A stretch of DNA of 64,000 nt from Macrostomum lignano (taxonomy: Eukaryota): assembly GCA_002269645.1 (NCBI GenBank), contig NIVC01001500.1:1-64000 (forward strand), written 5' to 3'. The translations under genes and the position numbers were made by a program. The notes beneath the pieces are model-generated. The model was not told the DNA's origin. It ran no database searches and worked only from the letters and a program-made list of their open reading frames with translations. This document shows, piece by piece, positions 1,181 to 50,284 of the stretch (positions are counted from its first letter, which is position 1; each line of letters begins with the position of its first letter).

Positions 1181-1858
1181 TTGTATGGTTAAATAATAAA
1201 CTTACGTTGAATACAATTTATTGCAAACAAACTCTACAAAATACACGTTGTCAAGAGTAACGAAAGTGATAAACAAATAAACCCTTGAATATAATGTTAA
1301 ATATGTTGTAGAATTATAGAGTGTAACATTATAAGATAGTTAAAGTTAATAAAATACATTATTATAGCTTTTCTATCATTTTCATTAGACTCATTTTAGG
1401 TTGTAATTAAACTTACGTTTTAACAAATCATTTTATTAAAAATAAAGCTATACAAAAATAATTTGTGCTTTAATAGACTTTTTTACCTTTTTAAAAACTT
1501 GAATAAATTTATTTTATAGCTTTATTGCTTTCAAATTGCCAAAAAACGAATTTTCATAAAACTTGCCCCCGATTTTTGGATTTCACCATATATAGTATAC
1601 TATATTAGAAAAATGGCATTTTTCTTTTAGTTTCATGTTGGACATGTTGCCATTTGTTTCTAATTCTATGTATATCTTTGGCTTTTAATTATCATAATTA
1701 CAAATTTATCTAAGCAAAAAGTCTAAATATTAATATCATAGGGCTTCTTATATTCTTATGATACATACATGCGCAACTTCTGAAATTACGCTGGCTGTGT
1801 GACTTAGTTTTTGATAAAAAATGCAACTTACCTATGAAAGAGCCAAGCAAAAACTTTA

Positions 1859-1922
1859 GGTAAACGGCAGGAGTAACTATGACCATATTTTTAAAGCTAA
1901 ATGCCTCGCCAGCTAATTAGTG
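1859..1922 (+). other. Degenerate 28S rRNA fragment (R2 / I-PpoI target region) inside the transposon
   Basis: GGTAAACGGCAGGAGTAACTATGAC-catatttttaaagct-AAATGCCTCGCCAGCTAATTAGTG vs conserved LSU GGTAAACGGCGGGAGTAACTATGAC-TCTCTTAAGGTAGCC-AAATGCCTCGTCATCTAATTAGTG (recalled consensus). Flanks match 24/25 and 22/24; the core matches 6/15. Confidence 0.85.
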
Positions 1923-2339
1923 CTGCGTGCAGATTCCGCGTTTTTATAACAGCTAATCAGTATGTCATCTAGTGGCGGCATGAAGCAATTAGTAAATTGT
2001 CAGTACAGTGTAGTGAGCGCACTACAAAAGTCATGATTCATGAATGTCCAGAAGTAAGTGAAGTAAATACAGTGTGACCTATAGCTCAAGAACGATTTGC
2101 TAGACGATTTGGCATTGAAGATGAGAGCCCTGATTCAGATGGCTCATCAGATGCGGAATACGAATCCAGTAGAGATACAAGCTGTGAAAACCCACAGATT
2201 TTTAAACCACTGAATTCTAATTCTCGGAACTATTTTTGCATAGATTCTAAATTTGAAGTCATGCTCAAACAAAAACTTGTTAACAGTTAGGAAAAAGGCA
2301 AAGATGGGAGTAATGCATGTTAAACTAAGATTTGAGGCC

Positions 2340-3015
2340 TTTGCAAATTCTCTCCATTCCTCAATCTTCTCATCCTCTTTCTTTTCTCTCTCATCCCTTC
2401 TCTCTTTCCTCTCCTCTCTCCTCTCCTCTCTTTCCTCTCCTCTCCTATCTCTTCTGTCTCCTCTACATTCTTATCTCTCCTCTTGTCTCTCTCCATTCCA
2501 CTCTACTCTCTCATCTTATCTTCCCTCTCGTCTCTCTCCACTCTACTCTCTCATCTTATCTCTCCTCTCTTTTCTACTCTCTCATCTCTCCTCTCTTCAC
2601 TCTCCTCTCATCTCCTCTATCCTCTCTTCTCTCATCTACTCTCTCCTCTTTCTTCTTTCCTCTCTTCTGATCTCATCCATCATCTTTTCTTTCCTCTTTC
2701 CTCTCATCTCCTCTTCTCTCTCATCTCTTTTTCCTCCCTCAGCTTTTCTCTCCTCTTCTATCTTTTCTACCATCGCATCACTCGCCTCTCCTCGTTTGCT
2801 TATCTCTAATCTTCTATTCCCTCTACTTTGAAGTAAGAAAATATGCACATATTTTTGTTGAAGATAAGAGGAGAGAAGAGGGCATTGAGGAGAAAGGGTA
2901 GAGAGAAAAGGGAGAAGAGAGGAGAGTAAAAATGAGAGGAGAGAGAAGAGGGAAAAGGGGGGAGAGAGAGAAGAGGGGAGGCAAGGTAGAGAAGAAGAGA
3001 GAGATGAGAGTTGAA
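2340..3015. repeat. Low-complexity polypyrimidine tract (2340-2830) followed by polypurine tract (2865-3015)
   Basis: Nearly pure C/T then nearly pure A/G sequence. It produces spurious Ser/Leu-rich ORFs. Confidence 0.9.
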
Positions 3016-3097
3016 GAGACACCAACCTTGCTACAAGTAGTTAGTAAGTTAGGAAGTTTCAAAGAACCCGAGGGGCAAGGGCCAGATAGAGGGGCTT

Positions 3098-3123
3098 CGC
3101 GAGCCGGAGTTTGCCAACCCCTG
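3098..3123 (-). mobile_element. Isolated hAT (Charlie/MER58-like) terminus nested in the long element
   Basis: Reverse strand reads CAGGGGTTGGCAAACTCCGGCTCGCG, the typical CAGGGGTYGGCAAAC hAT end. No partner end was found. Confidence 0.45.
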
Positions 3124-3261
3124 CTCCAGAGTTAAGAAATCAATGGGAAACTGTTGACGCGGGCTTCTGATTTCAAAGATCTTGTCTGTTGTTGAAGGCT
3201 TCTATTCTGTTTTTGCTCTCCTGCCACACTTGCACCTACTACCCCCTGATTGCCTCTGATT

Positions 3262-3705
3262 GTGACTTACTTCCCTCTTATTGCGACTTAGTTGCTTCTT
3301 TTTGCGACTTACCTAATCCTTTTGCAACTTACCTAACCCTTTTGCGACTTACCTAATCCTTTTTGCAACTTAATCCTTTTTGCGACTTACCTAATCCTTT
3401 TTGCGACTTACCTAATCCTTTTGCAACTTACCTAACCCTTTTGCGACTTACCTAATCCTTTTGCGACTTAGCTGATCCTTTTGCAACTTACCTGATTATT
3501 TTTGCAACTTACCTGATCCTTTTTGGGACTTACCTAATCCTTTTTGAGACTTACCTAATCCTTTTTGCGACTTACCTAATCCTTTTTGGGACTTACCTAA
3601 TCCTTTTTGTGACTTACCTAATCCTTTTTGCGACTTACCTAATCCTTTTTGGGACTTACCTAATCCTTTTTGTGACTTACCTGATTATTTTTACAACTTA
3701 GTTTG
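3262..3705. repeat. 19-21-bp minisatellite (TTTTGCGACTTACCTAATCC)n, ~20 copies
   Basis: Directly visible. The unit resembles the element's own subterminal motif TTTTGCGACTTACC at ~3822. Confidence 0.9.
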
Positions 3706-4854
3706 CTTCTTTTGCGAATTGTTTTTCTTTTGCTTCACCATTTTCCCTGAACTGCTCTTTCTTTCACTTTCCTCTTGCCTTTCTTGTTTTTTGTGTTTTT
3801 CTGTTTTTGGTTGACTCAATTTTGCGACTTACCCCTGGTCAGCCACGATTTACGGTGGCCAGATCGGCCAGGTCGGCCAGCAGTTGCGCATGTATGTTAT
3901 GATATCTTATTGCTTAGTCACCAAAATTGTTGTAGGGGTTATTTCTATCCCTAATATAATCTTTACAAACTGCTACCAAGTTGTAACAGGGGTTAATTCT
4001 ATCCTGTTGTTACCAAATTTTGTACTAGGCCTAGGGTTATTTCTTACTACTTGATTTTATTGGTTATTTCCTATACTTGTATATTTACTGATAGCATATG
4101 TACTTTTATTGGTAGCATATATACTTTTAGCCTGAGCAGTCTAATGGCACTATATTTCTAATTCTATATATCCCCCAGTTTTCTCCTCTAAGAGGGTTTC
4201 TCTCAGTCCAGGCATTACTGGGATCAGAGGGTCATAGCTTTTTTGCTGGGTATTCTACCCTAGGCCTAAGGTAGGTTTCTTAGACTCTAAGTCTAGATCT
4301 CTCTATTACCCTGTGGTAGGATTTCTGCCTTTTAAAGGCAAATTCTCCTGTTCTGAATCTGGATGTCTTGTTCTTTGAAAATAATTTGAATTCTCCCAGT
4401 CTTGGGGTTTCTAGTGCTTCTAAATAACTAAGTCAAAAAGTATTGATCAAGCTTCAATTCGAGATACTAAAATAGACTATAAACCCAAAGCAAGTGGCAA
4501 GTTGTTTCTTCTCTTGCTAACAGCTCGTGTATTTATATTCCTTTTCAGTAAGTTTTAAAACAAATAAAATTTTGTAATATTTATAATATTTACAATATTT
4601 TTGATATTATACTCATTAAAACAAAATAGCCTAATTTCAAATGCAATACTTTCTAGGATAATAACAAAGCCTATTTCATTAAGAAGACAAAAGTATTCTT
4701 AGAATTTTTTTGTGCACAAAAGCAAAATTTTGGCATAATCTGGTTAAAGCCAAAGATTCAAATTATCCAATGTGCCAATTATATTAGTAAAGGCAATCTG
4801 AACTTGGGTTTTTATTGCACCTATGCTTTTATTGCTTATATATAGGATTGTTGT

Positions 4855-5580
4855 ATACATGCATAGGTCACTGGTCAGATTGTCATATTCTATTTCATCA
4901 TATTGGATGACAAAGTGATTGTTACAGGTTTGTACTAAACACTGGGCTTAATGCCCTGAATATGTGCCGTAGTACCTTTGGCCTTCTTTTGCCAATGTCT
5001 GCTTGGCACCATTTAAACTTTATATTTATTTTACTTATTTCCAAGTGGTTTGCCTTTAGTTAGGCTCTTGTGCTCAATACAGGCAAATGAAATAGTCTAT
5101 GATCATATTTCAGTTAAAAATAAACTTTAATCTGCTCGGGCAAAAGCCAGCCTGCAGCAGTAATCAAAAGCAAAGTAGCTTGAAAAATAATATGACAAAG
5201 TGACCAAATATTTATTTATGCTGGATACTTCGTCATCAACCAACGCAATCTGTGTGGGATTTGAGTTTGTGTAAACTATTTTTTGTTTAATAACAATAAG
5301 TTGTGGCAAGCAGAATCGATCGACAGGTTTTATCAGATGACATATTAGATGACATTAGATGACAAAATGACTGGGATCATTAGGATTCCAAGATATGTTT
5401 GATTGTTACATTAATTCACTTGAAGTTGGAACTAATATGATCAGTAGATGACGAAATGACTCTCTTCAGGTAGTGCATGTTAATTAAGATGACAAAGTGA
5501 CCATAGTTAAGGTGAGCACCCCAGACACCCAGATGACAAAATGACATATGACGAAATGACTAGGAACCCATGCATGCATA
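4855..5580. mobile_element. Probable MITE with ~30-bp imperfect TIRs and internal ATGACAAA(A/G)TGAC motifs
   Basis: Left CATGCATAGGTCACTGGTCAGATTGTCATA vs right reverse complement CATGCATGGGTTCCTAGTCATTTCGTCATA. About 8 ATGAC(A/G)AA(A/G)TGAC motifs inside. No clear TSD. Confidence 0.5.
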
Positions 5581-8494: not shown

Positions 8495-10070
8495 ATCAAA
8501 GCATCACTTCCTTATCAGCATCACTTCCTCATCAGCATCACTTCACTACCAGAATCACTTCACCATCAGCATCACTTGCCCATCAGCATCACTTGCCCAT
8601 CAGCATCACTTCCTCATCAGTATCACAATTCCTCATCAGCATCACTTCACTACCAGAATCACTTCACCATCAGCATCACTTGCCCATCAGCATCACTTGC
8701 CCATCAGCATCACTTGCCCATCAGCATCACTTGCCCATCAGCATCACTTGCCCATCAGCATCACTTGCCCATCAGCATCACTTGCCCATCAGCATCACAA
8801 TTCCTCATCAGTATCACAATTCCTCATCAGCATCACAATTCCTCATCAGCATCACAATTCCTCATCAGCATCACTTGCCCATCAGGATCACAATTCCTCA
8901 TCAGCATCACAATTCCTCATCAGTATCACAATTCCTCATCAGCATCACAATTCCTCATCAGTATCACAATTCCTCATCAGCATCACTTGCCCATCAGCAT
9001 CACAATTCCTCATCAGTATCACAATTCCTCATCAGCATCACAATTCCTCATCAGCATCACTTGCCCATCAGCATCACTTGCCCATCAGCATCACAATTCC
9101 TCATCAGTATCACAATTCCTCATCAGTATCACAATTCCTCATCAGCATCACTTGCCCATCAGCATCACAATTCCTCATCAGTATCACAATTCCTCATCAG
9201 CATCACAATTCCTCATCAGCATCACAATTCCTCATCAGTATCACAATTCCTCATCAGCATCACAATTCCTCATCAGTATCACAATTCCTCATCAGCATCA
9301 CTTGCCCATCAGCATCACAATTCCTCATCAGTATCACAATTCCTCATCAGCATCACTTGCCCATCAGCATCACAATTCCTCATCAGTATCACAATTCCTC
9401 ATCAGCATCACAATTCCTCATCAGCATCACAATTCCTCATCAGTATCACAATTCCTCATCAGCATCACAATTCCTCATCAGTATCACAATTCCTCATCAG
9501 CATCACAATTCCTCATCAGCATCACAATTCCTCATCAGTATCACAATTCCTCATCAGCATCACAATTCCTCATCAGTATCACAATTCCTCATCAGCATCA
9601 CTTGCCCATCAGCATCACAATTCCTCATCAGTATCACAATTCCTCATCAGCATCACTTGCCCATCAGCATCACAATTCCTCATCAGTATCACAATTCCTC
9701 ATCAGCATCACAATTCCTCATCAGCATCACTTGCCCATCAGCATCACTTTCCCATCAGCATCACAATTCCTCATCAGTATCACAATTCCTCATCAGCATC
9801 ACAATTCCTCATCAGTATCACAATTCCTCATCAGCATCACTTGCCCATCAGCATCACAATTCCTCATCAGCATCACTTCCTCATCAGCATCACTTGCCCA
9901 TCAGCATCACTTCCTCATCAGCATCAATTCCTCATCAGCATCACTTCCTCATCAGCATCACTTCCTCATCAGCATCACTTCCTCATCAGTATCACAATTC
10001 CTCATCAGCATCAATTCCTCATCAGCATCAATTCCTCATCAGCATCACTTGCCCGTCAGCATCATTTCCC
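8495..10070. repeat. Compound minisatellite of 17-bp (CATCAGCATCACTTGCC) and 19-bp (CATCAG[C/T]ATCACAATTCCT) units
   Basis: Directly visible. It explains the three overlapping 500-aa plus-strand ORFs. Confidence 0.93.
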
Positions 10071-10453: not shown

Positions 10454-13400
10454 TCACGTCGAAGAAGACGGCAAAGAAGTTCCTTCTGCTCGTTGACGCC
10501 TGCGCAGACGCTGCTCCGGTCTCTGCCATCCGGTCTCCAATTTAATTTGCTCGTAGTTGCATTGCGTAGCGCATTCTCGGAACTCTCGTTGGTCATCAGA
10601 TGCAACAGCCGTTGGTTGCATCGTCGCAGGCGCTGTCGATTTCTCCGCTTCCTCATGCCAGCCAGCAAAGTCGTCAAACACGGTGTCTTGTCGCATCAGC
10701 GCCGAGCTGCGCACTGAGCCGCTTGTTGTTGACGACTTGCGTGCCGATTGTTGCGGCTGCTGCTGAACTGCTGAAACTTGTGATGGATGCAGAATTTGAA
10801 GTGCTCGATGATCTTGTGTGAGCTCATCATATACTTGCGAATTCTGGTGCACGGGTGACTCTTTCTGAATTATTGGTGGTGGCTGTGTCCAAGGTGGAAT
10901 ATCAACATTCGGCTCTCGTTGGTTTAGAGGCTTCCAGAACTCTAGATCATGTTGACCTTCTGATGTTTTTCTAACATCATCTGGCTCTTGTTGAATTTGA
11001 GGAGGATTCCTATTTTTTGTCTCTTTATGATATATTTGATCTTCGGGCGGCTTCCAAATTTCCGGCTCTTGTTGATCTTGAGCTTGAGGAGGCCTCCAAA
11101 TTTCCGGCTCTTGTTGACCTTGAGCTTGAGGAGGCCTCAAAATTTCCGACTCTTGATCTTGAGCTTGAGGAGGCCTCCAAATTTCCGGCTCTTGTTGACC
11201 TTGAGCTTGAGGAGGCCTCAAAATTTCCGACTCTTGTTGATCTTGAGCTTGAGGAGGCCTCCAAATTTCCGGCTCTTGTTGATCTTGAGCTTGGGGAGGT
11301 CTCCAAATTTCCGGCTCTTGTTGACCTCGAGCTTGAGGAGGCCTCCAAAGTTCCGGCTCTTGTTGACCTTGAGCTTGAGGAGGCCTCCAAATTTCCGGCT
11401 CTTGTTGACCTTGAGCTTGAGGAGGCCTCAAAATTTCCGACTCTTGATCTTGAGCTTGAGGAGGCCTCCAAATTTCCGGCTCTTGTTGACCTTGAGCTTG
11501 AGGAGGCCTCAAAATTTCCGACTCTTGTTGATCTTGAGCTTGAGGAGGCCTCCAAATTTCCGGCTCTTGTTGATCTTGAGCTTGGGGAGGTCTCCAAATT
11601 TCCGGCTCTTGTTGACCTTGAGCTTGAGGAGGCCTCCAAAGTTCCGGCTCTTGTTGACCTTGAGCTTGAGGAGGCCTCAAAATTTCCGGCTCTTGTTGAT
11701 CTTGAGCTTGAAGAGGCCTCCAAATTTCCGGCTCTTGTTGATCTTGAGCTTGGGGAGGTCTCCAAATTTCCGGCTCTTGTTGATCTTGAGCTTGGGGAGG
11801 TCTCCAAATTTCCGGCTCTTGTTGACCTTGAGCTTGAGGAGGCCTCCGAATTTCTGGCTCTTGTTGACCTCGAGCTTGAGGAGGCCTAAAAATTTCCGGC
11901 TCTTGTTGACCTTGAGGTGGCTTCCAAATCTTTGGTTTCTGGTGAATCTGTGTAACTATGCAAATCTCTGGCTGTTTTTTATTCTCTAGTGCTCGCTGAG
12001 AGTGTTCAGGCTGCTGCTGCTGTTGCTGCTCTTGCACCTGAACATCGAGTTTGTGACCGCAGCTTACTTCTACTGGTACGAAGTCAATTTTACGCAGTCT
12101 CTCCTGTTCTTGAAACACAGCAGAGGCATCTGATAAGCAGAAACTGGTAGTGGCAGCTTCACTTGGTACGGGGGATGGAGAGCGTCGAACCACCTGCACA
12201 AGCCCCATAGTGCGTCGCTGCTGCTGTGGCTGCGATGAATTTGTGCCGGCCTGTGCCGACAAAGTCTTGTTCCTACTCTGTGACAGCATACGGTCCTGTT
12301 GGATATAGTGAATGAAAATCAGATCTGATAAGTTTTAGGCCCAGTAGTAAACTCCCGACTCCTAACTCCACCTTTCTTATTGTCGCTATAAAATTTATAT
12401 AATAAACTCACATTTGCTACTCCCGTCGGACCGAACTGCTTCCATTGCTTCTGCTGCTGTTGCTTTCGCCCCGTCGACGTTGACCCTGATGACTTAGAAT
12501 TCGACGTCGTAGACGATAGTGACGGCTCAGTGAGACATTGCTGCCGGCGGATTCTCGGAGGGCAGCCAGAAACAGTCATGCTGCAGCTGCTTTTGCCATA
12601 GCCAAAGTCGCTAGTATCGTCGCGGCCCCAGGACAGCAGGGCGAGTTTGCTGCGCAGTTGGCGCAGCTTGTCAATATTAGCGCTGCCGAGGCCTTCGTCT
12701 AACAAACGGAGATCGTTAAGCTGCGAGAGCGGATCCGCTGAGCGGGCGTACACGGTGAACGGACTGCCGTTGACGTGGTTGCCCTGGTAGCAAACAGACA
12801 CCTCGTGAACGCCGTCGGTGCTGGGGTACCACACGATCTTGAGGTAAGCAGGGGAAACAAGAAAAATATCAGTTTGAAGTCTTGCACTCTATTTCCACCA
12901 AAGCCTTTCGAATCAGTCGCTTATTATGAATGTACGAGCTATTTACCAAATTTTAGCAAATTATAGAACCAATCAATATCATTTGCTGTCAATAATTGCA
13001 AGCTGAAGAGTTGGAGAATTATTTTTCACTTGTAAGGTAAAGACGCTTACCTGAATCCGGTCGCTGCTCAAGTACAGCATATTCACTGTCAGGTTGTTGC
13101 CCGGCTCATCTTGGCCAATCGGAGCAGCAGCGACGCTGTTACCGGCTGTTTGCGCGCCTTTCCATCTGCTGCTCGGACTCCGATAGGCCGGCAGGCGGTT
13201 CAACCGGAACGCCGACGCCTGCGGGCCGCGGATCTCTAGTCGGACGGAGCAGCCGCTGATTTGTCCACGACCTGACGCGCCATCGGGGCCACATGGGCTC
13301 ACCGTCGGCAGCTGGATCGTGAACTTGGCCGGCCGACCGACCACCGCTGATTGCAAGCCGATGCCGTGGGCCGAGCACTGGCGCACCAACTGGCGGATCG

Positions 13401-14352
13401 CCCGATAGCCTAACGCATCGTCGTCGTCATCTTCGTTATCATCGGAGTTGTCTCGATCTTTGCTGTCGTTGTGCCTGGCGTTATTGACTCTCTGTTCGCC
13501 GAAGGCTCTCCTGCGTTGATGATGCTCTTGCTGTTGCTGCAGCTGCTGTAGTGACAGCAAGTCCGGTGATCGGACATTTTCAGCTTGGTGGCGGATCATC
13601 AGCACCAGCTGGTAGACTTTGAAGTCGCTGGCTGACTGGGACATCTCCGTCGGCGTCACCACGCCCTTTAGGAATGGAAACAGGATCAAATTTTTAAAGG
13701 ACGGTCTTCACTCGAACTGTGTTTAGGTTTTATTGAAAAGCCGCATCTTTGGCTGCTGTAAGGAGGTGCCAAAACCTTTTAAAAAAGGGCGTGACATACT
13801 TTTGCCTGTGTCTTTAAACATTATAATTCAAATAAATTGTTTACACCCGCTCTAATTGGGCCAGATGTGCAACCGACAGCTCAGCCGCAGCTATTGCGCA
13901 GCACATCTGAAGGATCCGTACGGCTGGTCATTCTGAGGACTGGGGGTCGCCACAGACCCTCAATTACCCCAGTTAATGCTGGCACCCATTTTACAGCTGG
14001 GTGAACGGAAGCAATGCAGAATAAAGTGTCTTGCTCAAGGACACAACTTGTTCCAGTGGGATCGGGAATCGCTGCAACCCCCTATAAAACAAAATATGTG
14101 CAAATAATTGAATCTGCTCCCACACCTGAGGCAGCCGCAGGTGCTTGCAGGCGAGCCGCAGCCCGAGCTCGCAGTTGGTCACCCGCTGCGAAGGCTTTAG
14201 TGAGGTGTAGGGCGGGCAGCAGCCAGGCCGGAGGGCCTCCATCAGGGCGCACAGGGTGATGCCGTCAGCCCAGCAGGTAGAAAAATTGTGCACAGTGAAG
14301 TAAGGCAACTGGGCCTGAGCCCACTCCAGTAGCTGAGCCCGCTGCTGCCGTT
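10454..14352 (-). CDS. Short filamin-like protein: calponin-homology domain, one filamin Ig repeat, Q/P-rich 13-aa repeat tail (5' end not resolved)
   Basis: Exons 14352-14126 (LLEWAQAQLP...NFSTCWADGITLCALMEALRPG; CH2-like), 13665-13051 (CSAHGIGLQSAVVGRPAKFTI), 12837-12412 (IVWYPSTDGVHEVSVCYQGNHVNGSPFTV; filamin repeat end), 12295-10454 (QEPEIWRPPQAQ[D/G] repeats, TGA). All junctions are GT-AG and phase 0. Confidence 0.8.
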
Positions 14353-16171
14353 CTGCAGTAGATTTCGACAGACAGGTATTGACGCGGCAGCATTGAATTG
14401 GTACCTCCCTTTTTAGAAAATGGGCAACCTTTTTGTAAGATTTTCTTTGTTTCTTGGAAAATAGTTGATCGACGAAGGCTTGCAATTCTTTTTTTAACAA
14501 AGAAATAGAGCAGGAAAGATTTATAGCTACGGAGCGGAAGTCTTATAACAAAGAATTTAAGTTGTGCTAGCGCAGACACTTGACACATGATTTTATTGAT
14601 ACGCGTTGATCTGTCAGATTAGATTTTTTTATTTGGTAAGATACTACTTAATTATAGAAAATTCTTGTACACTACTTCTCTACTTTGTACTCGTAAGCTC
14701 GAAACTTTACAAGCGGTCGTATCGTTGAAAAGTCTTCTGTGTCCGTTCATCCATCCATCCAAAATGTGCTAAGATCTGAACATTGGACGAATTCACAAAC
14801 TGGAAATTTAGAATTTAGAGATTTCTGTAAGTGTAACGTGCCGTGGCTAAGGAGTTGTAAGGATTAAAATATTCCGAAAACATGCTTTTTCGCAAAGAGA
14901 AATTCTAAGCAGAACTTTTGACTATAAATGCACTACGAACCATTTTGTTTTGATGATTACATCATAAGGCAGTGTCAGTAAATTAGCTTTTAATTAATTG
15001 CATAACCATATTAACGCAGCGTGGCAGCATATCACAAGACTCCATTGCACCTTAGACTTGATTTATATTGTGCAACATGCATATTTTGAACTGTAATGGA
15101 AAACGATACTGACTAAGAAATTGATTACGTCATAACTGCTTCCTGTGATTTTACTCTAACCGACTTGATGTGAGACCTAATTTATGAGTGCTGCCCGCAA
15201 TGCATAATCATGAATTGACTGAAAGCTAGCCTAGGTGTAAACAGGTTGAGTTCACAGCAGACATAACGAAAGGGAAGAAAGGAAGCGTCATGTCAACCAT
15301 AAAATATGTATGTCAACTTTAAAAGAATCAACTACATGTTCATCTCTTGGGTTAGGGTTCAACCATTGAATCGCCCTGTCTAAAATGAAGCAATCATGGG
15401 GGAGCTGCTCAAATTCCAATGCTAATTGGGGGGGGGGGGTTGCTGAAATGTCAAGACTCATGGGAAATTGCTGAGATATCAAGGGCCGAAGCTAGGGGTG
15501 CTGATATCTTAGGCTAGTAGATCGGAGGATGCTTTTTGCTTTAAACATCATTTTCGTTAAGAAACTAACGATAAAAGGTGAAAAACTTCAAGTAGCTAGT
15601 TTATTAAAATAATTCCTTTCTTCTTTGCCTCCCCCAGATTGCTAGTCACTTTTTATAGCTCAAAAATTCTCTAATGCTCACTTTTACCGTAGCTAGTATC
15701 AAAGTTCCAAAGCCACTCTAGCTATGAAGTTTTTCATTTTTAAAAATAAAAGACTCTTTAAAGTCAAGCACGCATTGAGTGGCAGATAGCCCCAGACAGG
15801 TTGACCTCCTCGACTGTCCTTGGGAGCTCGGATCAACGAACCCTCCCCAACATGGTCCGAGCGATCAACTTCATCGATCGCTTTTCGTTCCCGGTTGGTA
15901 TTTTTTCATATGCATAAGGAAAACGTAGCAAAGCTAACTAAAGGCAAGTAGAGCACGAAGATTGGCGTTTGACGACATTGCTGTGGACCATAAAGTTTGA
16001 GCTTTAGCTTTTCTGCTTGTGGCTGGGTAATCATAAAAACAAACTTCTATTATATTGCGGTGCATTGCTGGTGAGGCAAACCAGCACCAGACAGAGTGAC
16101 CTCTGAGTTATTGCATTTTTTATTGTGGAATTTTCCATAGCTAGTGGATAAAGATACACTGCGTGCAAAAA

Positions 16172-17213: not shown

Positions 17214-19585
<2,372 letters not shown>

Positions 19586-24860: not shown

Positions 24861-25736
24861 ATGATGATGCTACTCAACCGGGAACCAAAGAGCTTCATCA
24901 TTTTAAGATTGATACTGCTGCTGCCGCTGTTGAGCCGCCCCTTGAGCTGCTGCAGGCAGCGAGTCGCCTTCCACCCGATCCTCACCTCGAACTGCGTGTC
25001 CCCAGCTCACTACCAGCTGCTCGACCTTGACACCGCGGCCTGTGCGCTTCGCTGCGGAGCGGCTCCGAGATGCAGAGCCTTCGCCATGGAAGCTGCTGCC
25101 TCCTCAGACCGGCAGCTCTGCCTGCTGTTCGCCTTCGACGCCTGCAGCTCGCAGCTGCTGCTCGATCCCGGCTCGTGGAGCGGCGGCTGCCTCAGCAGGA
25201 GGCTTCGAGTCTTCGTCAAGCAGTCGGAGGGTCTCGAGCCGGGCCGACTCTGTCCCGTCGACTATCGCTGGGTGCCTGGCGTCAGCGGCAGCCGCTTCAA
25301 GGGCTCGCTGTACAAGGCTGCTGGGAGCGGGCTGGTGGCCAACTGGAGCGCTCAGGCCGTCAGCTGCCGGAGCTTCCTGACCACCTCGGACGGGTCCGCC
25401 ATGCCGCTGACGAAGCTCGCCGACCTGAGCAGCGTCGAGGAGCTCCAGGATGTGAGGGAGTCAACTGGCCTGACTGTCTATAACGCCAGCCAGCAGATCT
25501 GGGTTGGTGCCGTCAGTTTGGGCAACAGCAGCTGGGTGTGGGCGGACTGCGACTGGCCGCTGCCGCTCCTGAAGGCTGGCAGCGGCGGATTGTGGAACGC
25601 TGGCGAGCCCAACGAAGGCAACAAAACGGTGCTGCGAGCCAGGATTTATAACTCAGAACTGTATGACAGATCCGATTGGTACGAGTTTAATGGGGCCTGT
25701 GAATGCGCTGATCCATTCTCTTACTTTGCCACGTAG
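24861..25736 (+). CDS. Secreted PAN/apple + C-type lectin domain protein, intronless, 291 aa
   Basis: Signal peptide; PAN-like C...ACALRCGAAPRCRAF...CLL; CTLD-like CP..Y, W...C, IWVGA...SWVWAD, LWNAGEPN. Confidence 0.8.
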   Translation: MMMLLNREPKSFIILRLILLLPLLSRPLSCCRQRVAFHPILTSNCVSPAHYQLLDLDTAACALRCGAAPRCRAFAMEAAASSDRQLCLLFAFDACSSQLLLDPGSWSGGCLSRRLRVFVKQSEGLEPGRLCPVDYRWVPGVSGSRFKGSLYKAAGSGLVANWSAQAVSCRSFLTTSDGSAMPLTKLADLSSVEELQDVRESTGLTVYNASQQIWVGAVSLGNSSWVWADCDWPLPLLKAGSGGLWNAGEPNEGNKTVLRARIYNSELYDRSDWYEFNGACECADPFSYFAT

Positions 25737-29788: not shown

Positions 29789-32700
29789 TCATTTGCCAAG
29801 CGCCTTCATTCGCTCTTGCAGGGAGGCCGTGTTAGCTTGAACAGTCTTCAAATCTTCAGTTAGGCGCTTCTCTAGCCCAGCTAGGAGGCTGGCCGAGGAC
29901 TCCAGCTGAGCTGATGAAGCTCGCTGAGATTGATCGATGAGATTCAGGGCGCCGGAGAATTGCATAGCCTAACGGGAGTTTGAGGGGCGGATTGAGAGCG
30001 GATTTTGAGGGCGGATTTAAATCGGATTGAGTGAATTAGGGGCGGATTGAAAGCGGATTTTGAAAGGCGGATTGAGAGCAGATTTTAAGGGGCGGAGTGA
30101 GAGCGGATTCTGAGCGGCGGATTGAGAGCGGATTCTGAGGGGCGGATTGAGGGGCGGATTGAGGGGCGGATTGAGAGCGGATTTTGAGGGGCGGATTTAA
30201 ATCGGATTGAGTGAATTAGGGGCGGATTGAAAGCGGATTTTGAAAGGCGGATTGAGAGCAGATTTTAAGGGGCGGAGTGAGAGCGGATTCTGAGCGGCGG
30301 ATTGAGAGCGGATTCTGAGGGGCGGATTGAGGGGCGGATTGAGGGGCGGATTGAGAGCGGGTTTTGATGGGCGGATTTTAAATCGGATTGAGTGAATTAG
30401 GGCGGATTGAGAGCGGATTTTGAGGGGCGGATTTAAATCGGATTGAGTGAATTAGGGGCGGATTGAAAGCGGATTTTGAAAGGCGGATTGAGAGCAGATT
30501 TTAAGGGGCGGAGTGAGAGCGGATTCTGAGCGGCGGATTGAGAGCGGATTCTGAGGGGCGAATTGAGGGGCGGATTGAGGGGCGGATTGAGAGCGGATTT
30601 TGAGGGGCGGATTGAGAGCGGATTCTGAGGGGCGGATTGAGGGGCGGATTGAGAGCGGATTCTGAGGGGCGGATTGAGGGGCGGATTGAGAGCGGGTTTT
30701 GAGGGGTGGATTGAGAACGAGTTTTGAGGGGCGGATTAAGAGCGGATTTTGAGGGGCGGATTAAGAGCGGATTTTGAGCGACGGATTGCTAGAGGATTAG
30801 AAGGCTAAGAGAGACCTGTCGAATTGCTTTAAATTTCCAATTTTTTATAAACGGAAATATTTAATAAGAAAAAAACCGTACCTGCTCGTGCAGCTCTCGC
30901 AAAGCGGTCAGGCGGCCCACAATGCCGTGAACGGAGTCGGCCAGGCCGTCCCACTTCTTCACCAGTTCGTAGAGTTCAGCAACCCGAGTCTGCAGTGCGA
31001 AACAGTGGAGGATTAACGCTGGCTGTAAAAAACTTTAAATCACGGTTGTCATGCTATTCAGCATGATTTATGACGCCATATTCGTCTGTCCACCCCTGAT
31101 TTCCTACCGATACATGCCCTTCCCTCCCTCCCTGTCCCTGACCTTCACTCCCACCCCGTCTATGACCTTCCCTCCCTCCCTGTCCATGACCTTCACTCCC
31201 TCCCTGTCCATGACCTTCACTCCCTCCCTGTCCAGGACCTTCACTTCCTACCTGTTCATGACCTTCACTTCTTACCTGTCCATGCCCTTCCCTCCCACCC
31301 TGTCTATGACCTTCACTCCCTCCCTGTCCAGGACCTTCACTTCCTACCTGTCCATGCCCTTCCCTCCCTGTTCCTGACCTTCACTCCCTCAATGTCCATG
31401 CCCTCCACTCCCTCCCTGTCCATGACCTTCACTCCCTCCCTGGCGATGACCTTCACTCCCTCCCTGTCCATGACCTTCACTTTCTTCCTGTCCGTGACCT
31501 TCACTCCCTCCCTGTCCGTGACCTTCATCTCACCTGAGTGTCGGCATCGGCCAGGGGCTCCCGCTTGTCGCTGGTGAGCTGAGCCAACCGATGGTTAAGT
31601 GCGGCCAGTCGCGAGTCCACCTGCTCCAGACTGGCCGGCTCCAGCAGGGCCAGTTTACCAGCCAGTCGATGAGTTGCCTCCAGCAGAGGTCGGCCGGCCA
31701 AATCGCCGGACAGAGCCGGGGCGCGCAGGTGAGCCTCGCCGATGGCCGCTTCGAGGCGGGCTAGTCGAGCTTCGAGGTCTTTAGGTACGGCGGGTGCCCC
31801 GCTAGTAGGTTTGGTGTACACCTGTAGATTGTGTAGTATATCCCTAATTAGGCGACGAATCATTTACCTATGCATATACAGCTATAATAACAGTGACTGT
31901 ATACAGGACCTAAAAGTACTAATAAGATGACGAGGCTAAATATGTTATAGTTACTCACGCCGAATACCCAAACAAGATTTTCAATTGCTCTCACCTCGTA
32001 AACCAGCGAGCCACTGGCGCCTTGAGCAGCCGCCGCCGCAGTTGGCTGCTGTTTTCCTAATCGCTCTAATTGACCAGCCAGTCGCTTCTCCAAACAGCCC
32101 TCCGGATCGAACACGTGCAGCCCCTCAGCCTCCGGGCCAAGAAGCGAGTCCAGATGCAACGCCAGCAGCTCGGACTGGGCGCCGCGAATCATAGCAGCCA
32201 ACTGATCTGGCGACACTTCGCTGTCGCCGTCGCCGGCGCTATCGGCGGATTTGCGTGCCTCCTTGACAGCGGCAGACAGGCCGGCAATCTCGGCTTGTAG
32301 GCGTCTGCATTGGAAAAAATAGATTTAAGGTCGGTGACCTATATTAAGTGCAAGGCACTGCATTCTGGCACTCTGAAGATCCATTTCGGTACCCGAAGAT
32401 CCATATTGGTATCTGAAGATCTATTTCGGTACCCGAAGATCCATTTTGGTATCTGAAGATCCATTTTGGTATCTGAAGATCCATTTTGGTACCTGAAGAT
32501 CCATTTCGGTACCCGAAGATCCATTTTGGTACCTGAGAATTCATTTTCGTACCTAAAGATCCATTTTGGTACCTGAAGATCCACTTTGGTACCTGAAGAT
32601 CCATTTTGGTACCTGAAGATCCACTTTGGTACCTGAAGATCCATTTTGGTACCTGAAGATCCATTTTGGTACCTAAGGATTCATTCTGGTGGCTGAAGAT

Positions 32701-35700
32701 CCAATTTGGTACCTGAGCATTTATTTTGGTACCTGAAGATCCAACTTGGTACCTGAAGATTCATTTTGGTACCTGACGATTTATTTTGATACTTGAACAT
32801 TCATTTTGGTACCTGAAGATCAATTTTGGTAGCTGAAGAGCTATTTCGGTGCCTGAAGATTCATTTTGGTACTTGAATATTCATTTTGGTACCTAAGATC
32901 CATTTTGATACCTGAAGATCCATTTTGGTACCTGAAGATCAAGTTTGGTAGCTGAAGAGCTATTTCGGTGCCTGAAGATTCATTTTGGTACTTGAATATT
33001 CATTTTGGTACCTAAGATCCATTTTGATACCTGAAGATCCATTTTGGTACCTGAAGAGCTATTTCGGTGCCTGAAGATTCATTTTGGTACTCGAATATTC
33101 ATTTTGGCACCTGTAGATTCATTTTGGTATCTGAGGATTCATTTTTGGTGCCTGAATATTCATTGTTTGCATTGATATATCACCACCAGTGAACACAAAT
33201 TGCTAGCTGTAACATGTGTAGTCACCTGTACTTCTGCATCGGTGTTTCAGCATCCCTAGCAGCCTCATCGAGCAGTTCAAGATCGCCAACGGCACTGCTA
33301 GCGTAGCCAATTTTGCGACCAGCTCTGATGGCGTCAGTGAAATCCACCCGACTGGAGTCCAGCTGCTTGCCTTTGAACTTTGCGGCGGCTGCGGCTGGAT
33401 CGAGGCTGGACTGATCCACATCGCCTGACTCTGCCTGGTTGCTGGGGAACTGTGGGGGAATGGGAGATTAACATGAAATGTCTGCTTGGCAATGAATAGG
33501 TCATTGAATATATATCAATACTTACCTTTGTGTCTCTTTGTTGATCACTTTCTGGGAGATCTCCTGACTCATAAACATCTGGCTGGCCAGTAGCCTGCAA
33601 ACAGAAATAAAATTTTTATGCTATAAAATACTAAAAAAGACACATCTTTATTATGCAAATTCTGCATGGTATCAATAAATAGTATTGCTCATAAGAGTAA
33701 ATTAAAAGCTAGGCTATAATGCTAAAGACAAAGTAAGGTTAAAATAAAGAGTTTTCAGATGCTTAAGCTGTAGGAACTTGGACTTTTGCTCTTTGGACAA
33801 AAATATTTCTTTAGGCTTATGTTTAATAGTTGTTATGTGTCCAGTGACTAGACAATAAGCTATTTCATCTGTATAGTTAAATGGATAATTACTAAATACA
33901 TCAGTAGCTAATTGTTTTGTGAATATTTCAATAGATATTTATAGAATTCAATTTTGAAGCACAAAAAATTGCATATGATCAATCCCAATTGCTCATGTAA
34001 TGGAGAAGAGCACATAAATAAAGGCTAAAATTAACCCTACCCCAACTACCCTTTGGCCCATATATGCACAACACAGCCAATGTAAGTTGCAAAAATGACT
34101 ACTTGAAAAAAGCAAAACTTAAAACTTAAAATACTAATTAGATGACAAGATATTTAGCTTTAATAATATAATCCTAGTTACTCCTGCAATTTATCCAAAA
34201 TTATGTTTCTTTTTTCTTATGTTTCTTTGATAAATAAGTCAATTTTTTGGTCAAAAAGTAAGTTGCATAGTCAGTATAAGGCAAACATAGTCTGGATCAT
34301 GTTGAGTGCACGCCGGAATGCTCTGAACCAAATTTTTACATTTAAAAAATGCACTTCAAAAAAGCAAAGTCTTCAACATTTTAAAAAAAAATTTATAGCA
34401 TGCAAATATACAACATTTCTTTTTGGCACATTTAAATTTACTTGTCATTTTGCAATAAAAATAAGTATGACTCTTGTCTTCACAAGACCATGTCTTTTCA
34501 CAAACTTTTGTCTCAACAAAACATGACCTACTATCACACCAGGCCATATTCTATGCCAGCTATTCCACACCATAGCACACCAACATGCCACTTTTGGCAT
34601 GCAATACCCAATTACATGCCAATACATGTCACAATTTTTAGGCCAAACCAAATGCACACTAGAATTTTCTGGCATGATATATGCTTTCCAGAGTATGGTA
34701 AAGTAAGGGAATTGTGCATTTAGCCTTGGCCTTATTATATACAACAAAAATTATTCTATTTTAACTAATATTCTATATTTTATAGTTCAACAAAATACTA
34801 GCCAAGCTTTTATTAAAAAACTAAAACCCCTATTAAATCATATCTACTATGCTAATATGTATTCAAAATATGATCCCTATAGTCCGGATCATGCTGGGTG
34901 CACACCCAAACAGAAATTGAATAATTGCAAATGCACACCAAAAAAATTGAGTGCATACCCATTCTCAAAAATATGTTGGTATTGCAACCGTAAATGACCT
35001 TTTTAACATTGTGACAAAAAGGGGCCTTTTTAAAATTGTGTAATGAACCCTTTTTAGCAAATAATTTGGTTAGTTTTAATGCTTTTTAGGCAATATTATT
35101 TATAGCAAAAAATCAATATACACAAAGATTTGTTTAAGTGCTTCATAACAGGCTAAAAACTAGAAAGCTTGAAATTTACACTTGAAAATGAACTTTTTTC
35201 ATCTTTTTTCTACTTTACAAAAACTCTTCAGTGTGATTTTATAAAGTATACACCAGGTATACATACATACTATTTTCTTAGGAGTGATGCACACCGTACA
35301 TGCGCACCCCCCTGGTTTACACTGGCCATGCAACTTACTTTTTGACCAGAAATGCAAATTACCTGTGAAAGAAACCCTAGAGCAACATTAACACAATTTT
35401 GGGTAAATAGTAAGAGTAACTATGACTGTCTTATAAGGGATGCCTTATAAGAGTGCCTCATCATCTAATTAGTACTATGTCTATATTCTTTGGGGTGGGC
35501 ATTTTTGCGACTTACCCCTGGTCCACCACAATTTACAGTGGCCAGATTGGCCAGGTCGGCCAGCAGTTGCGCATATATGATGCACACCAACTATGCATGC
35601 CTAATTTTGGCATGCAAGGCCAATGCATGCCCAAATTTTTGGGCATAGGCATATACTACATGATCATGAGTGTGGTATGATCCCAATTCCCTAATTCCAT

Positions 35701-46673: not shown

Positions 46674-48790
46674 GAGGAGGTGAGGGACGTGATGGCCGGG
46701 TCTGTGTACTTCTCAGAGCTCGACGTCGCCAAAGTCTTCAATCAAATTGAAGTCGCCGAAGAGTCCAGGGACCTGCTGATGTTCTCCACGCCCATCGGTA
46801 CATGTCCGCCTCGGAGATCCTGCAGCGGGTGACGACCTCCGTCCTGAACGGCCTCCCGGGCGTAAAGTGGATGTATGACGACATCCTGGTGTACACGAAG
46901 GACATCAAGGAGCACAATCAGCGTCTTCGAGACTGTCTGGCTCGGCCAAAGGAGAACAAAATCACACTGAACGCCAAGAAGTGTTGGTTCGCCCTGCGGG
47001 AGGGCAACTTCCTTGCCATGCGACTCACGGCCGCCGGCATCCACCCGAGCAAGGAGAAGGTGGAGGCCATCCGCAACTTCAAGCGGCCGACCAACACGAC
47101 CGAGGTCCGCTCCTTCCTGGGTCTCGTCACCTTCGTGGCCCGCTTCATCAGCAACCTGTCCGATAAGGCCCACCAGCCGTTGCGGGAGGTGACGAAGCGA
47201 GCCATCGAGTGGACAAGGGGCGAGCAGCAGGAAGCCGCCTTCAACGACATCAAGCGCACGATCTCCAGCAGCCAGGCGCTGACATTCTTCAACAGCGAAC
47301 TGCAGACCCAGCTGATCGTAGACGCCAGTCCGACCGGCGTCGGCGCCATCCTAGCCCAGGTGCAGCCGGACGGATCGACACGGCCGGTGGTCTACGCCAG
47401 CCGCAGACTGAGCCCGACGGAGCAGCGCAACTCCCAGACGGAACGGAGCGTGAGGCCCTGGCGGTGAAGTACGGCGGCCTGAAATTCTATCTCTACCTCA
47501 GCGACAGTTCAAGGTCATCACAGACCACAAGCCGCTGTTCTCGCTGTTCAGCCCGGGATCTCGGCCACCGCCACGGATCGAGCGAATGGGACTGCGGCTG
47601 CAAGACCTCGTGTTCCAGATGGTGTACCAGCCCGGCGCCAACAACCCGTTCGACGTTTTGAGCCGCCAGCCGCTGTCGATGCCGCCCAACAACGTTGGTG
47701 AACAGAAGATCTCACGATCATGAACAGAAGCCAATCTACGTGGCCACGGCAGTCCAAGCGGCAACGCCGATGTCCATCATCCTGGTGACCATCAAAGCGA
47801 CCTCCGACCAAGATGCTACAATCCAAGCTACGCTTCACGGCATCCGCTGTCATCGCTGGGACAAGAGCAACCCGAACCTGAAGGGGCTGCACGGCGTCGC
47901 TCACGAGTTGTCCGAGCTCGACGGCCTGCTGCTGCGTCTGGGCCAGATCTTCATGCCTACAGCACTGCGCTACCGGTGCCTGCAGCTGGCGCACCAAGGC
48001 CACCAGGGCATCAGAAAGACGCTGGATCGCCTGCAAGCTAAGGTCTGCTGTTGGCCCAGCATCGGTAGAGGCGCACGTGGCGGCTTGCCTAAGCTGCCAG
48101 ATTTGCACCCGGGAGACCACGCCGAAGGCGACGCCGCTCAAGCCGACCGAACTACCGGCGGCGCCCTGGCTGGAGCTCGGCATGGACTTTCTCGGGCCCG
48201 TCAACGGCAAGTCGCTGTTTGTCTGCACGGGCCACTTCTCGCGCTTCCCACTGGTCCACGTGCTGCGGAATTGGTTCAGCATCTTTGGGCAGCCGATGAA
48301 AGTGACGACCGACAACGGCCCGCCCTTCGCGTCGGCCGAGTTCAGCAGCTTCCTGGCGGACCAAGGCGCCAGGCACCACCGGATCACTCCGCTGTACCCA
48401 CAGGCCAACGGCGCTACGGAAAGGTGCAACCAGGGGCTCAACAAGGCCATCCGTGCGGCCGTGGCCGAAGGCAGGGACTGGACGGCAGCGATCGACGAGT
48501 ACCTGGCTGCGTACAGACGCATTCCGCACAGCGCTACTGGGATCGCGCCCGCCAGCCTCCTGTTCGGGCGGCAGATCATCGACACGATCCCCAACCTCCA
48601 GCACTCGCAGCCGGTGGACGTGACGAGAGCAGCCACTAAGGGCAAGGATCAGCAGCCCAAGAAGAAGATGAAGCGCTACGCCGACCAAGGGGCCAAGGCA
48701 GCAGACCACGACATTCGGCCAGGAGACCGCGTCCTGCGACGGCTGCAGTCCAGACAAAAGGCCGACGCCTTCTACGAGTCAACGCTGTGG
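46674..48790 (+). mobile_element. Degenerate Ty3/Gypsy pol (RT-RNase H-integrase) with several frameshifts and deletions
   Basis: RT: FSELDVAKVFNQIEV, WMYDDILV. RNase H: LIVDASPTGVGAILAQ, PVVYASRRL. Integrase: AHQGHQG, CQIC, WLELGMDFLGP, TTDNGPPF, TPLYPQANGATER. The RT-RH-INT order is Gypsy-type. Confidence 0.93.
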
Positions 48791-50284
48791 GTCGTGTCCG
48801 AAGTGTTCGGCGAATTCCACGAGTTCCACGAATGTCCCTATCATGCTGCAGCCCTGCATTATTGTTTAATTTGTTTGAACACCTAAATCTTTCCTAAATT
48901 TGCTATTTCGCCTAAGTTCCTAATTCCTAACCCTACGTTTTAGCCTTCACGGCTTGTATTTTTGAGTCCTCACGGCTTTCACAAAATTTGAGGCGGACAG
49001 TTGAACTTATTATTAGTTGGGGCACGGTAAAACAAATAATGATAGTGTTTATAAGAAAAGAAATTTAAACAAAAATAAGAAACCTTGATAACAAAAATAA
49101 ATTGCTGATTGGCAAGCGTAATATGTTCAATTACTATTAATACGAGTAAGAAGATACGATATTATTCGTGCCCACTATAATATTATTTACAGTAGGACTA
49201 AGCGATTTTTCCGATCGTCGAACCAAGAGGGGGGAATTCCCCCTGACAATTTTTTTGCTGCGCCGGAACGGAGCAACGCAGACTCACGAAATTCAAGAAC
49301 ACGGGCTAGCTTTTTGTTGCGCACCTTCTCAAACAAGAATCAAGTCGCCAGCCCACCGAACCGTCGAGATATTCGATTATTCTGCCAGAAGGTCGCTTTT
49401 TTTCATTAGCGTTAGTGTATCCAGTACAACCCTGAGCGCCAATCAGCACTGCGCCTCAGTGAGTCTTGCCAAGCCTCCAAACTTCATCAGCACGTCGAAC
49501 ACATGTATCTGCATCAGCTCTGACTTTGTTGGTCACTGGCCTTCACCCAGGCGGAGCTTCTAGACCTTCAACAGGTGGCACCATGCAGTTGACCATGAAC
49601 ACCCTGATGCGAATTTCTCTAGTTTCGCTGATCAAGCCTCGACTGTCGGACATCCTCAACTAGTCTCTCAAGCATTCAGTCATCACCTCGACGCCGTCGG
49701 CACTTTAAAATCGGCATTTAATAAAACAAACAACGAACAAAGTACACTCGAGCTTTTATTGCTCTCGTAATGCTCTCGTGATGCACCAATCGAAGCATCA
49801 GCACAGTTGCATTTTATTGACTAAGCCAGCTGATTTATGTATTCAATCAACCAATACGTTAATGTATTTTACGGAGCTAGCCCAGGTTCTCGAAAAATTA
49901 ACAAAACTTTAATCTGACCCGCTCTGACGGGCAGCACGACAAGCAGCTCAGTGTGAGAACGAGCAGGTGGGCCGAAAACAGCTAAACGGCTTAAAATCAA
50001 CGATCGAGAAAGCCATGAGTCTGCTGCAGCATATTTTAAGAATTGATGTGGGGCTAATAGGCTCTATACTGCTAAGTTGTAGCGATAAAATAATCAATAG
50101 CATGCTAAGTATGCTGCTGCTGCAAATTCTACTTGAGTTGCCTAAAAACCGTGAGATCGCTCCAGTGATTGACGCATGCAGCGGGGTTTCAGGAGCGAAT
50201 GTGCAGCTAAGCTTTTACATTGGACTGAATGACCGTAGGGGCGTCTATGTTTGAGAGGTGCCAGCTCAGTCAGTCAGTAAGTAA

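Follow-up and report, generated by a model that had tools for sequence, protein, structure and literature searches.

Several mobile elements are known to carry pieces of ribosomal DNA (rDNA). Pokey, a piggyBac transposon of Daphnia, inserts in the TTAA of CTCTCTTAAGG in the 28S ribosomal RNA (rRNA) gene and holds rDNA-derived pieces in its 5' non-coding region (PMC3849761). Pack-TIR and Pack-MULE elements are non-autonomous and multi-copy, have terminal inverted repeats (TIRs) and target-site duplications (TSDs), and enclose a fragment of host DNA (Tan et al. 2021, PMC8277862); capture of host DNA by TIR elements through gap filling or replication-fork switching is documented in animals (PMC8277862). 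A 2024 review of rDNA-derived parts of mobile elements covers the intergenic spacer (IGS) repeats of Pokey, SINE28, the 5S-derived short interspersed nuclear elements (SINEs) and the terminal-repeat retrotransposons in miniature (TRIMs) Cassandra and Ajax, and its Table 2 contains no DNA transposon with a piece of the 28S coding region (PMC10946416). Here we describe a family of TIR elements, with members E1 to E4, that carries such a piece. It lies in a 64,000-nt stretch of the Macrostomum lignano genome (assembly GCA_002269645.1, contig NIVC01001500.1, positions 1 to 64,000, forward strand), hereafter called the window.

The family resembles Pack-TIRs in that a 28S-derived segment is found inside E1, E2 and E3, between the TIRs. 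As such a Pack-TIR-like element is multi-copy, capture would have been followed by transposition. The cargo differs from that of Pack-TIRs, being about 70 bp of an rRNA gene and not a protein-coding fragment. With Pokey and its mPok derivatives the family shares MITE derivatives (miniature inverted-repeat transposable elements), an rDNA-derived sequence near the 5' end and the same 28S hot spot. However, Pokey makes TTAA duplications, inserts into 28S and holds IGS and internal transcribed spacer 2 (ITS2) pieces that evolve in concert with rDNA, whereas the present family has 8-bp duplications, a decaying piece of 28S coding sequence and, in the window, no sign of rDNA targeting. SINE28 (28S), SINE3 and other 5S-derived SINEs, Cassandra and Ajax are likewise mobile elements with a piece of an rRNA gene (PMC10946416), but these are retroelements in which the rRNA part forms the promoter or the body; here it is internal and has no evident promoter role. 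R2 elements with 28S-derived sequence in their 3' untranslated region (Kojima et al. 2016, PMC5035012) have also internalised 28S from around the insertion hot spot. In that case the carrier is a retrotransposon and the piece is tied to target choice during reverse transcription, while here the carrier is a DNA transposon and such a link is absent. The initial annotation knew of no described hAT MITE of this design. Pokey (PMC3849761) and Pack-TIRs (PMC8277862) are in fact parallels, but full-text literature searches retrieved no publication in which a MITE with 8-bp TSDs holds a piece of the 28S coding region. The cargo is thus apparently undescribed, although TIR transposons that have captured host DNA are as such a known kind of element.

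E1 to E4 form a multi-copy, cut-and-paste, non-autonomous TIR family with 8-bp TSDs (Table 1). E1 and E2 have CATA(C/T)ATGCGCAAC-type inverted ends, and each is bordered by perfect 8-bp TSDs; the initial annotation had rightly recognised these two insertions with their paired TIRs and homologous ends. The TIRs of the family measure 15-19 bp, with ends that read CATAYATGCGCAAC. In E1 the left end is CATACATGCGCAACT and the right end its reverse complement, and the left end pairs with 3878-3897 (inverted repeat I20, 20 nt, 95% complementary). The right end of E2 reads CATATATGCGCAACTG as reverse complement and its left end, CGTACATGCGCACC, is slightly mutated (2 changes). A search with a 16-mer end motif, allowing up to 3 mismatches, gave 4 matches in the window versus 0.51 expected, and three of the four are ends of E1 or E2. 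Over 103 bp the right arms of the two elements show 83% identity, rising to 91% in their final 78 aligned columns; identity of the left parts is 66% over 192 bp. Matches of E1 to the family profile cover both arms (1765-1954, E = 2.6e-54; 3804-3896, E = 4.8e-27). Since perfect 8-bp duplications abut paired inverted ends in two cases, the evidence for cut-and-paste insertion is strong.

Members were searched by low-stringency self-comparison of the window and by nhmmer with a profile built from the family. Two carriers of the 28S piece, E1 and E2, had been reported by the initial annotation; both stand, and with E3 and E4 the window contains four. Beyond these, no further family copy was detected in the window with the family profile, and no paralogous empty sites were found there. 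E3 is 67-71% identical to E1 and E2 and includes an inverted 59-nt match to the left arm of E2. Its right end (CATATATGCACAAC) is still present. Given a decayed left end and flanks (GTTCAGAG and GGCCAAAG) that agree at only 5/8 positions, it is an old copy. E1, E2 and E3 can be aligned along both arms, while E4 matches only the middle of the profile (positions 102-184, E = 3.2e-5). E2 and E3, at 285 and 262 bp, have the features of MITEs: a length below 800 bp, TIRs, a TSD, no coding capacity and multiple copies. E4, E3 and E2 all lie within 3.7 kb (31913-35579), in and just upstream of a dynamitin gene. This cluster does not reflect recent local hopping, since the three diverge from each other by 30-40%; it may simply mark an insertion-tolerant AT-rich region.

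Table 1. Features of the 28S-carrying TIR family and of the E4 locus (positions in the window)
Feature	Position	Strand	Evidence
E1, long non-autonomous member, 2133 bp	1764-3896	+	TIR and TSD, family profile
E1 left TSD TTATGATA	1756-1763	.	same 8-mer at 3897-3904
E1 left TIR CATACATGCGCAACTTCTG	1764-1782	+	inverted repeat I20, end-pattern search
E1 28S-derived piece	1858-1927	+	blastn E = 2e-12; Rfam LSU
E1 orphan 70-codon open frame, its sole frame	2078-2287	+	no Pfam family, no protein homolog
E1 CT-rich microsatellite-like block	2368-2757	+	Tandem Repeats Finder; pairs imperfectly with 2860-3010
E1 AG-rich block, imperfect inverse of the CT-rich block	2860-3010	+	inverted repeats I1-I19
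E1 tandem array, 20.7 x 21-bp units (CTTTTTGCGACTTACCTAATC)	3277-3700	+	Tandem Repeats Finder score 568
E1 right subterminal motif TTTGCGACTTACC	3821-3833	+	
E1 right TIR	3878-3896	-	end-pattern search, inverted-repeat search
E1 right TSD TTATGATA	3897-3904	.	same 8-mer at 1756-1763
E4, internal fragment (28S piece only), two deletions in the centre	31913-31969	-	blastn, family profile
E4 28S-derived piece	31913-31969	-	blastn E = 2e-3
Dynamitin-gene intron containing E4, 173 nt, GT..AG	31822-31994	-	flanking exons
E3, decayed member, 262 bp	34059-34320	-	family profile E = 1.7e-58
E3 right subterminal motif TTTGCGACTTACC	34081-34093	-	
E3 28S-derived piece	34128-34196	-	blastn E = 1.6e-8
E2 left TSD ATGCACAC	35287-35294	.	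same 8-mer on the other side
E2, MITE-sized member, 285 bp	35295-35579	+	family profile E = 4.4e-87, TIR and TSD
E2 28S-derived piece, 9-base net expansion in the centre	35401-35479	+	blastn E = 3e-7
E2 right subterminal motif TTTGCGACTTACC	35504-35516		
E2 right TSD ATGCACAC	35580-35587	.	same 8-mer on the other side

The 28S piece was identified by blastn of a 28S reference against the window. This reference consists of the Rfam consensus of the eukaryotic large-subunit (LSU) rRNA, extended with a few conserved 28S bases. All four loci were recovered (Table 1) and nothing comparable was found elsewhere in the window. Homology extends from GGGTAAACGGC to about GTGACGCG, i.e. approximately 70 bp from -35 to +34 of the R2 nick (TTAAGG/TAGCC, the slash marking the nick). 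The homology is longer than the initial annotation (about 65-70 bp) had it, and starts further upstream than was claimed, at GGGTAAACGGC. The piece begins 94 nt (E1), 106 nt (E2) and 124 nt (E3) inside the left end, in the same orientation. The Rfam model LSU_rRNA_eukarya at relaxed thresholds matched E1 only (1869-1924 on consensus positions 2255-2310; 12 bits, E = 1.3) and gave nothing for E2, E3 and E4. A weak covariance-model score is expected because only a 56-nt local piece of a 3401-position model is involved. No rRNA or other RNA reached the Rfam gathering level in the window (12 bits for E1 versus a threshold of 50), and at that level the window contains no rDNA. The 28S piece is a fragment and not an rRNA gene. 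Other weak hits at relaxed thresholds, to small nucleolar RNA (snoRNA), microRNA (miRNA) and group II models, are at chance level.

The edges of the piece are also common to the members. At all four loci the upstream junction reads TTTRGRTAAA where 28S has GCGCGGGTAAA, and E2, E3 and E4 share the downstream edge ATTAGTAYT where 28S has ATTAGTGAC. Directly after GAC, a derived ATATT is present in E1, E3 and E4. E4 has the element-specific junctions TTTGGGTA and ATTAGTACT together with this ATATT; because the junction bases and the derived ATATT are common to members, E4 is what is left of a family member and did not arise independently from rDNA. Could the resemblance to 28S be a product of chance or convergence in AT-rich repetitive DNA? 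The low Rfam score of E1 and the lack of a score for the other copies would fit such an idea. However, the sequence-level matches span 64-73 aligned positions, with E = 2e-12, 1.6e-8 and 3e-7 although the search covered 64 kb, and the arms of E1 share 89% identity with an rRNA segment that is universally conserved. This effectively refutes the idea and leaves it a negligible probability.

As the 28S piece is found at the same internal position in every recognisable member in the window, it was present in the family ancestor. We consider it probable that this is a non-autonomous TIR family whose ancestor captured a 28S fragment before amplifying, and that the piece has since been a passenger. 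The common ancestor would have gained about 70 bp of host 28S, from -35 to +34 of the R2 nick, some 100 bp inside its left end. The likeliest route would be filler capture, in which a repair polymerase switches template while filling an excision gap; the abundant rDNA could have served as ectopic template for this gap filling. Amplification after capture would have copied the piece to every descendant, and as a passenger it would decay like the rest of the element. Copies share 66-84% identity in the 28S arms, compared with 60-68% in the left and 61-91% in the right arm of the element. Judged by this comparison of three copies, there is no significant sign that the 28S piece has been kept better than the rest of the element.

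The piece could also be a transduced flank of an element that once resided in rDNA, for example if two ends located about 70 bp apart in 28S were mobilised as a composite. As Pokey demonstrates, it is possible for a DNA transposon to live at this 28S hot spot and to trade sequence with rDNA. In our family the left arm, of about 95-125 bp, is a module separable from the remainder of the element, and the two meet at the piece. This scenario appears quite unlikely to us. It requires two nearby insertions and a composite transposition, which is less parsimonious. Moreover, the intact insertions are in AT-rich non-rDNA, at the unrelated targets TTATGATA and ATGCACAC, with no sign of rDNA targeting, and the window itself is devoid of rDNA.

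For a closer comparison with 28S, the piece was partitioned into a 15-nt centre (TCTCTTAAGGTAGCC), where the I-PpoI core and the R2 nick lie, and two arms, one of 26 nt upstream and one of 29 nt downstream. The central 15 bases are the most damaged part of every copy. In E1 the arms are identical to 28S at 49/55 positions (89%; upstream arm 24/26) and the centre at 6/15. The corresponding values are 41/55 and 8/15 for E3, and 42/55 and 5/15 for E4, the latter with 8 indel columns. In E2 the arms keep 46/55 positions and the centre 13/15, but the centre is split by 7 inserted bases. The R2/I-PpoI cleavage core, whose intact form is CTCTCTTAAGGTAGCC, is therefore broken in all four copies. The core string is given as I-PpoI substrate in PMC2175346. 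The initial annotation quoted an intact target string, which is present in none of the copies: the centre TCTCTTAAGGTAGCC is retained at 5-8 of 15 positions or split by an insertion. Likewise, no copy contains the 15-mer I-PpoI core CTCTCTTAAGGTAGC with up to 3 mismatches. The sole window match to CTCTCTTAAGGTAGC, at 5460, is unrelated and within chance expectation. E1 and E3 share the derived centre ATATTNTTAAAGCTAAAT. In E2 the insertion amounts to the degenerate core being duplicated in tandem, CTTATAAGGGATGC / CTTATAAGAGTGC (35426-35460). Each of these two units holds the palindrome CTTATAAG (a self-inverse match), a TTAA into which TA is inserted.

This pattern, and a few other points, weigh against the passenger explanation. 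Damage is concentrated in the central 15 nt (Fisher test, p = 2e-4 for E1 and 4e-3 for E4), which simple uniform neutral decay does not predict. The piece is nearly symmetric about the R2 nick (-35 to +34), and a random capture need not be. All conclusions are drawn from four related copies within one 64-kb window, neither family copies from outside it nor empty sites having been obtained. The damage to the centre represents perhaps two or three independent events and not four, because E1, E3 and E4 share part of the altered centre. The family alignment and the profile matches show indels scattered along the whole element. For us, the excess damage in the centre is a lead; we do not count it as evidence that site-specific cleavage took place.

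If the lead were followed to its end, an rDNA-specific agent, for example R2 or another R element, a Pokey-like piggyBac or a homing endonuclease, would use the piece, or would once have used it, as an ectopic target. An ancestral member would have taken a complete recognition region for R2 or a homing endonuclease (-35 to +34) through the genome. The MITE would then spread decoy or landing-pad sites, and the damaged centres would be scars of repeated site-specific cleavage and error-prone repair, or the outcome of selection for copies that escape hits. A span of -35 to +34 around the R2 nick corresponds to nearly a whole target region, and the upstream arm is well kept in E1 (24/26). R2 proteins bind upstream target DNA via zinc-finger and Myb domains (PMC12180492). 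In addition, the centre was altered differently in at least two lineages, by substitutions and deletions in E1, E3 and E4 and by duplication or insertion in E2. Nevertheless, none of the four copies has a usable core or is interrupted at the nick site, and the window contains no R2-like reverse transcriptase, endonuclease or gene, its sole retroelement being a Ty3/gypsy-type pol. With indels along the whole element, one in the centre is unremarkable, and among four related copies the effect comes down to the two or three events mentioned above. We thus find both the target role and the proposed origin of the scars very unlikely. Judged from their sequences, the 28S pieces are not functional R2 or I-PpoI target sites today, since the core is intact in none. 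The proposal of the initial annotation that the family spreads R2/I-PpoI target sites is not borne out: the core is degenerate in all four copies, CTCTCTTAAGGTAGC is absent from them even with 3 mismatches, and no copy is interrupted. Copies interrupted by R2-like open reading frames (ORFs) at TTAAGG/TAGC, which it had suggested looking for, do not occur among the four in the window. It had also listed three outcomes that would speak against it, namely absence of the piece from most members, chance-level similarity to 28S, and TIR/TSD pairing that is not reproduced at other loci; none of them was observed within the window.

Better-kept arms around a free centre would be expected as well if the 28S piece had a cis function for the transposon, either through a 5' non-coding or promoter role or by offering a host or transposase factor a place to bind. 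Every member contains the piece, and its distance from the left end is fixed. The contrast between arms and centre is large (49/55 versus 6/15 in E1), and the 5' arm is nominally the best-conserved segment between copies (76-84%). Pokey provides a precedent, with rDNA IGS and ITS2 repeats maintained upstream of the transposase in the 5' non-coding region. However, the excess conservation of the 28S arms over the element arms is small and, with three copies, not significant. The 3' arm (66-72%) is no better conserved than the left arm of the element, and the right arm of E2 (91%) is above the piece. Furthermore, no autonomous copy places the piece relative to a transposase gene, and the sole frame of E1 has no homolog. 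We therefore judge a cis function unlikely, and we retain capture followed by amplification as a passenger as the preferred explanation.

If this explanation is true, the family is a further case of an animal in which TIR transposons have taken up host DNA and spread it. It would also generate scattered short 28S-like hits that can be misread as rDNA pseudogenes, R2 sites or contamination. If, on the other hand, the centre proved to be hit or lost non-randomly genome-wide, this would be the first evidence of target sites of rDNA elements being mobilised out of rDNA by another transposon, with implications for the confinement of R2-type elements to rDNA. A true ectopic target would mean a direct interaction between a DNA transposon and an rDNA-specific element, in which the MITE acts as a decoy or landing pad and then escapes.

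An 8-bp TSD is typical of the hAT superfamily but not exclusive to it, as duplications of this length are also made by P elements and others. The terminal bases of hAT elements are 5'-YARNG (CAGNG, TAGNG), their target consensus is nTnnnnAn, and autonomous members encode a transposase with a BED finger and a hAT dimerisation domain. The P superfamily is characterised by a 7-8-bp duplication, ends starting with CA and a THAP-domain transposase. The present family shares with hAT MITEs the 8-bp TSDs, perfect on both sides of E1 and E2, the short TIRs (15-19 bp) and the repeated subterminal motifs. Unlike hAT MITEs, its ends read CATAC or CATAT, which departs from YARNG. Only one of the two TSDs, too small a sample for a consensus, fully follows nTnnnnAn (ATGCACAC fits at both positions, TTATGATA at position 2 only), and no hAT transposase, or any other transposase ORF, was found in the window. 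Both the duplication length and the CA start are compatible with the P superfamily. The hAT label given initially thus agrees with the TSD length, a feature shared with P, and disagrees with the ends. We describe the family as a TIR family with 8-bp TSDs that is hAT-like or P-like, hAT membership being unproven. Membership in piggyBac, the superfamily of Pokey, can be excluded, since the duplications are 8 bp long and unrelated to TTAA.

The extra 1.86 kb that distinguishes E1 is located downstream of the 28S piece. It comprises a CT-rich block, a partly complementary AG-rich block, a family-specific 21-bp array and a 70-codon frame. For this frame, no Pfam family and no homolog among 1.84 billion representative proteins was found, and it is probably non-coding. 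The idea of a transposase remnant in E1 was rejected on these grounds. The 21-bp array is built from the subterminal motif of the family (consensus TGCRACTTACC). The motif TTTGCRACTTACC is found near the right ends of E1, E2 and E3, and related TGCAACTTAC units near the left ends; TTTGCRACTTACC has 21 matches in the window versus 0.17 expected, none of them outside family members. Two other short sequences, CCCCTGG and TTTACAsTGGCCA, occur in direct orientation in both arms of E2 (35309-35328 and 35512-35546). In E1 both are present in the right arm (3829-3863), while the left arm (1785-1796) has only a degenerate ATTACGCTGGC and no CCCCTGG. As their orientation is the same in both arms, the arms are partly direct repeats inside inverted ends. 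A hairpin or miRNA-like role for E2 was discarded, since its folding z-score of -2.2 is unremarkable given the inverted ends. A tRNA-derived origin was also rejected; no tRNA genes or tRNA-like parts were found.

Exact patterns of the family were also searched for in sequence collections. Neither the right-end pattern GGCCAGCAGTTGCGCATRTATG nor the family-specific left junction of the 28S piece had a match in the metagenome collection, and one pattern scan of the viral collection gave none. Among prokaryotic genomes, a 22-nt right-end pattern had a single exact match, in an Oscillospiraceae metagenome-assembled genome (L001, 5589-5610). There is no similarity beyond the pattern and about 0.5 chance matches are expected in that collection; because the flanks show no similarity, we consider this match as due to chance.

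The intron that contains E4 is flanked by exons matching Pfam Dynamitin positions 127-204 and 220-294. Joining 31995 to 31821, i.e. removing the intron, keeps one open frame. Two possible roles of E4 at this locus were rejected. It is not an intron-creating insertion, as neither border of the intron is an end of the element and 25 nt of intron precede the piece. A snoRNA is not supported either, the piece being sense to 28S on the strand of the gene and not antisense. The intron also holds, some 45 nt downstream of E4, a weaker second copy of the 3' arm of the 28S piece, GATTCGTCGCCTAATTAGGGAT (77% over 30 nt; 31841-31870, minus strand), which suggests a local duplication or a second fragment. 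A query with the dynamitin exons retrieved no database match. Satellite-like arrays flank the dynamitin exons, with 40 units of 20 bp at 32361-33164 and 17.5 units of 24 bp at 31113-31527. A weak Rfam hit to MIR2655 (32582-32679) is artefactual and stems from the 20-bp array.

Elsewhere in the window, a large tandem array at 8500-10064 consists of 85 copies of a 19-bp unit with a 74-bp higher-order period, and produces long spurious ORFs in three frames. A 611-codon ORF starting with ATG (10454-12289, minus strand) includes about 21 tandem 42-bp repeats, i.e. 14 residues each, of the type PPQAQGQQEPEIWR (array 11049-11916), and is possibly the gene of a repeat-rich secreted or structural protein. 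The Ty3/gypsy-type pol at 46802-48886 is degenerate, with its reverse transcriptase-RNaseH and integrase parts in different frames. The best database relative of its reverse transcriptase, at 59% identity, is in a 2.9-kb metagenome contig from the Joint Genome Institute (JGI; L002). Host gene fragments (12319-14500, minus strand; 17586-18699, plus strand; 24861-25736, plus strand) include filamin repeat and calponin-homology exons, a pancreatic-lipase-like exon and an ORF with a weak PAN domain. The best relatives of the lipase-like exon are lophotrochozoan, with 52-56% identity (bivalves, gastropod, rotifer; best 56%). With no match for dynamitin either, the host lineage appears to be thinly sampled among animals. 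The exons in the window are GC-rich and their surroundings AT-rich.

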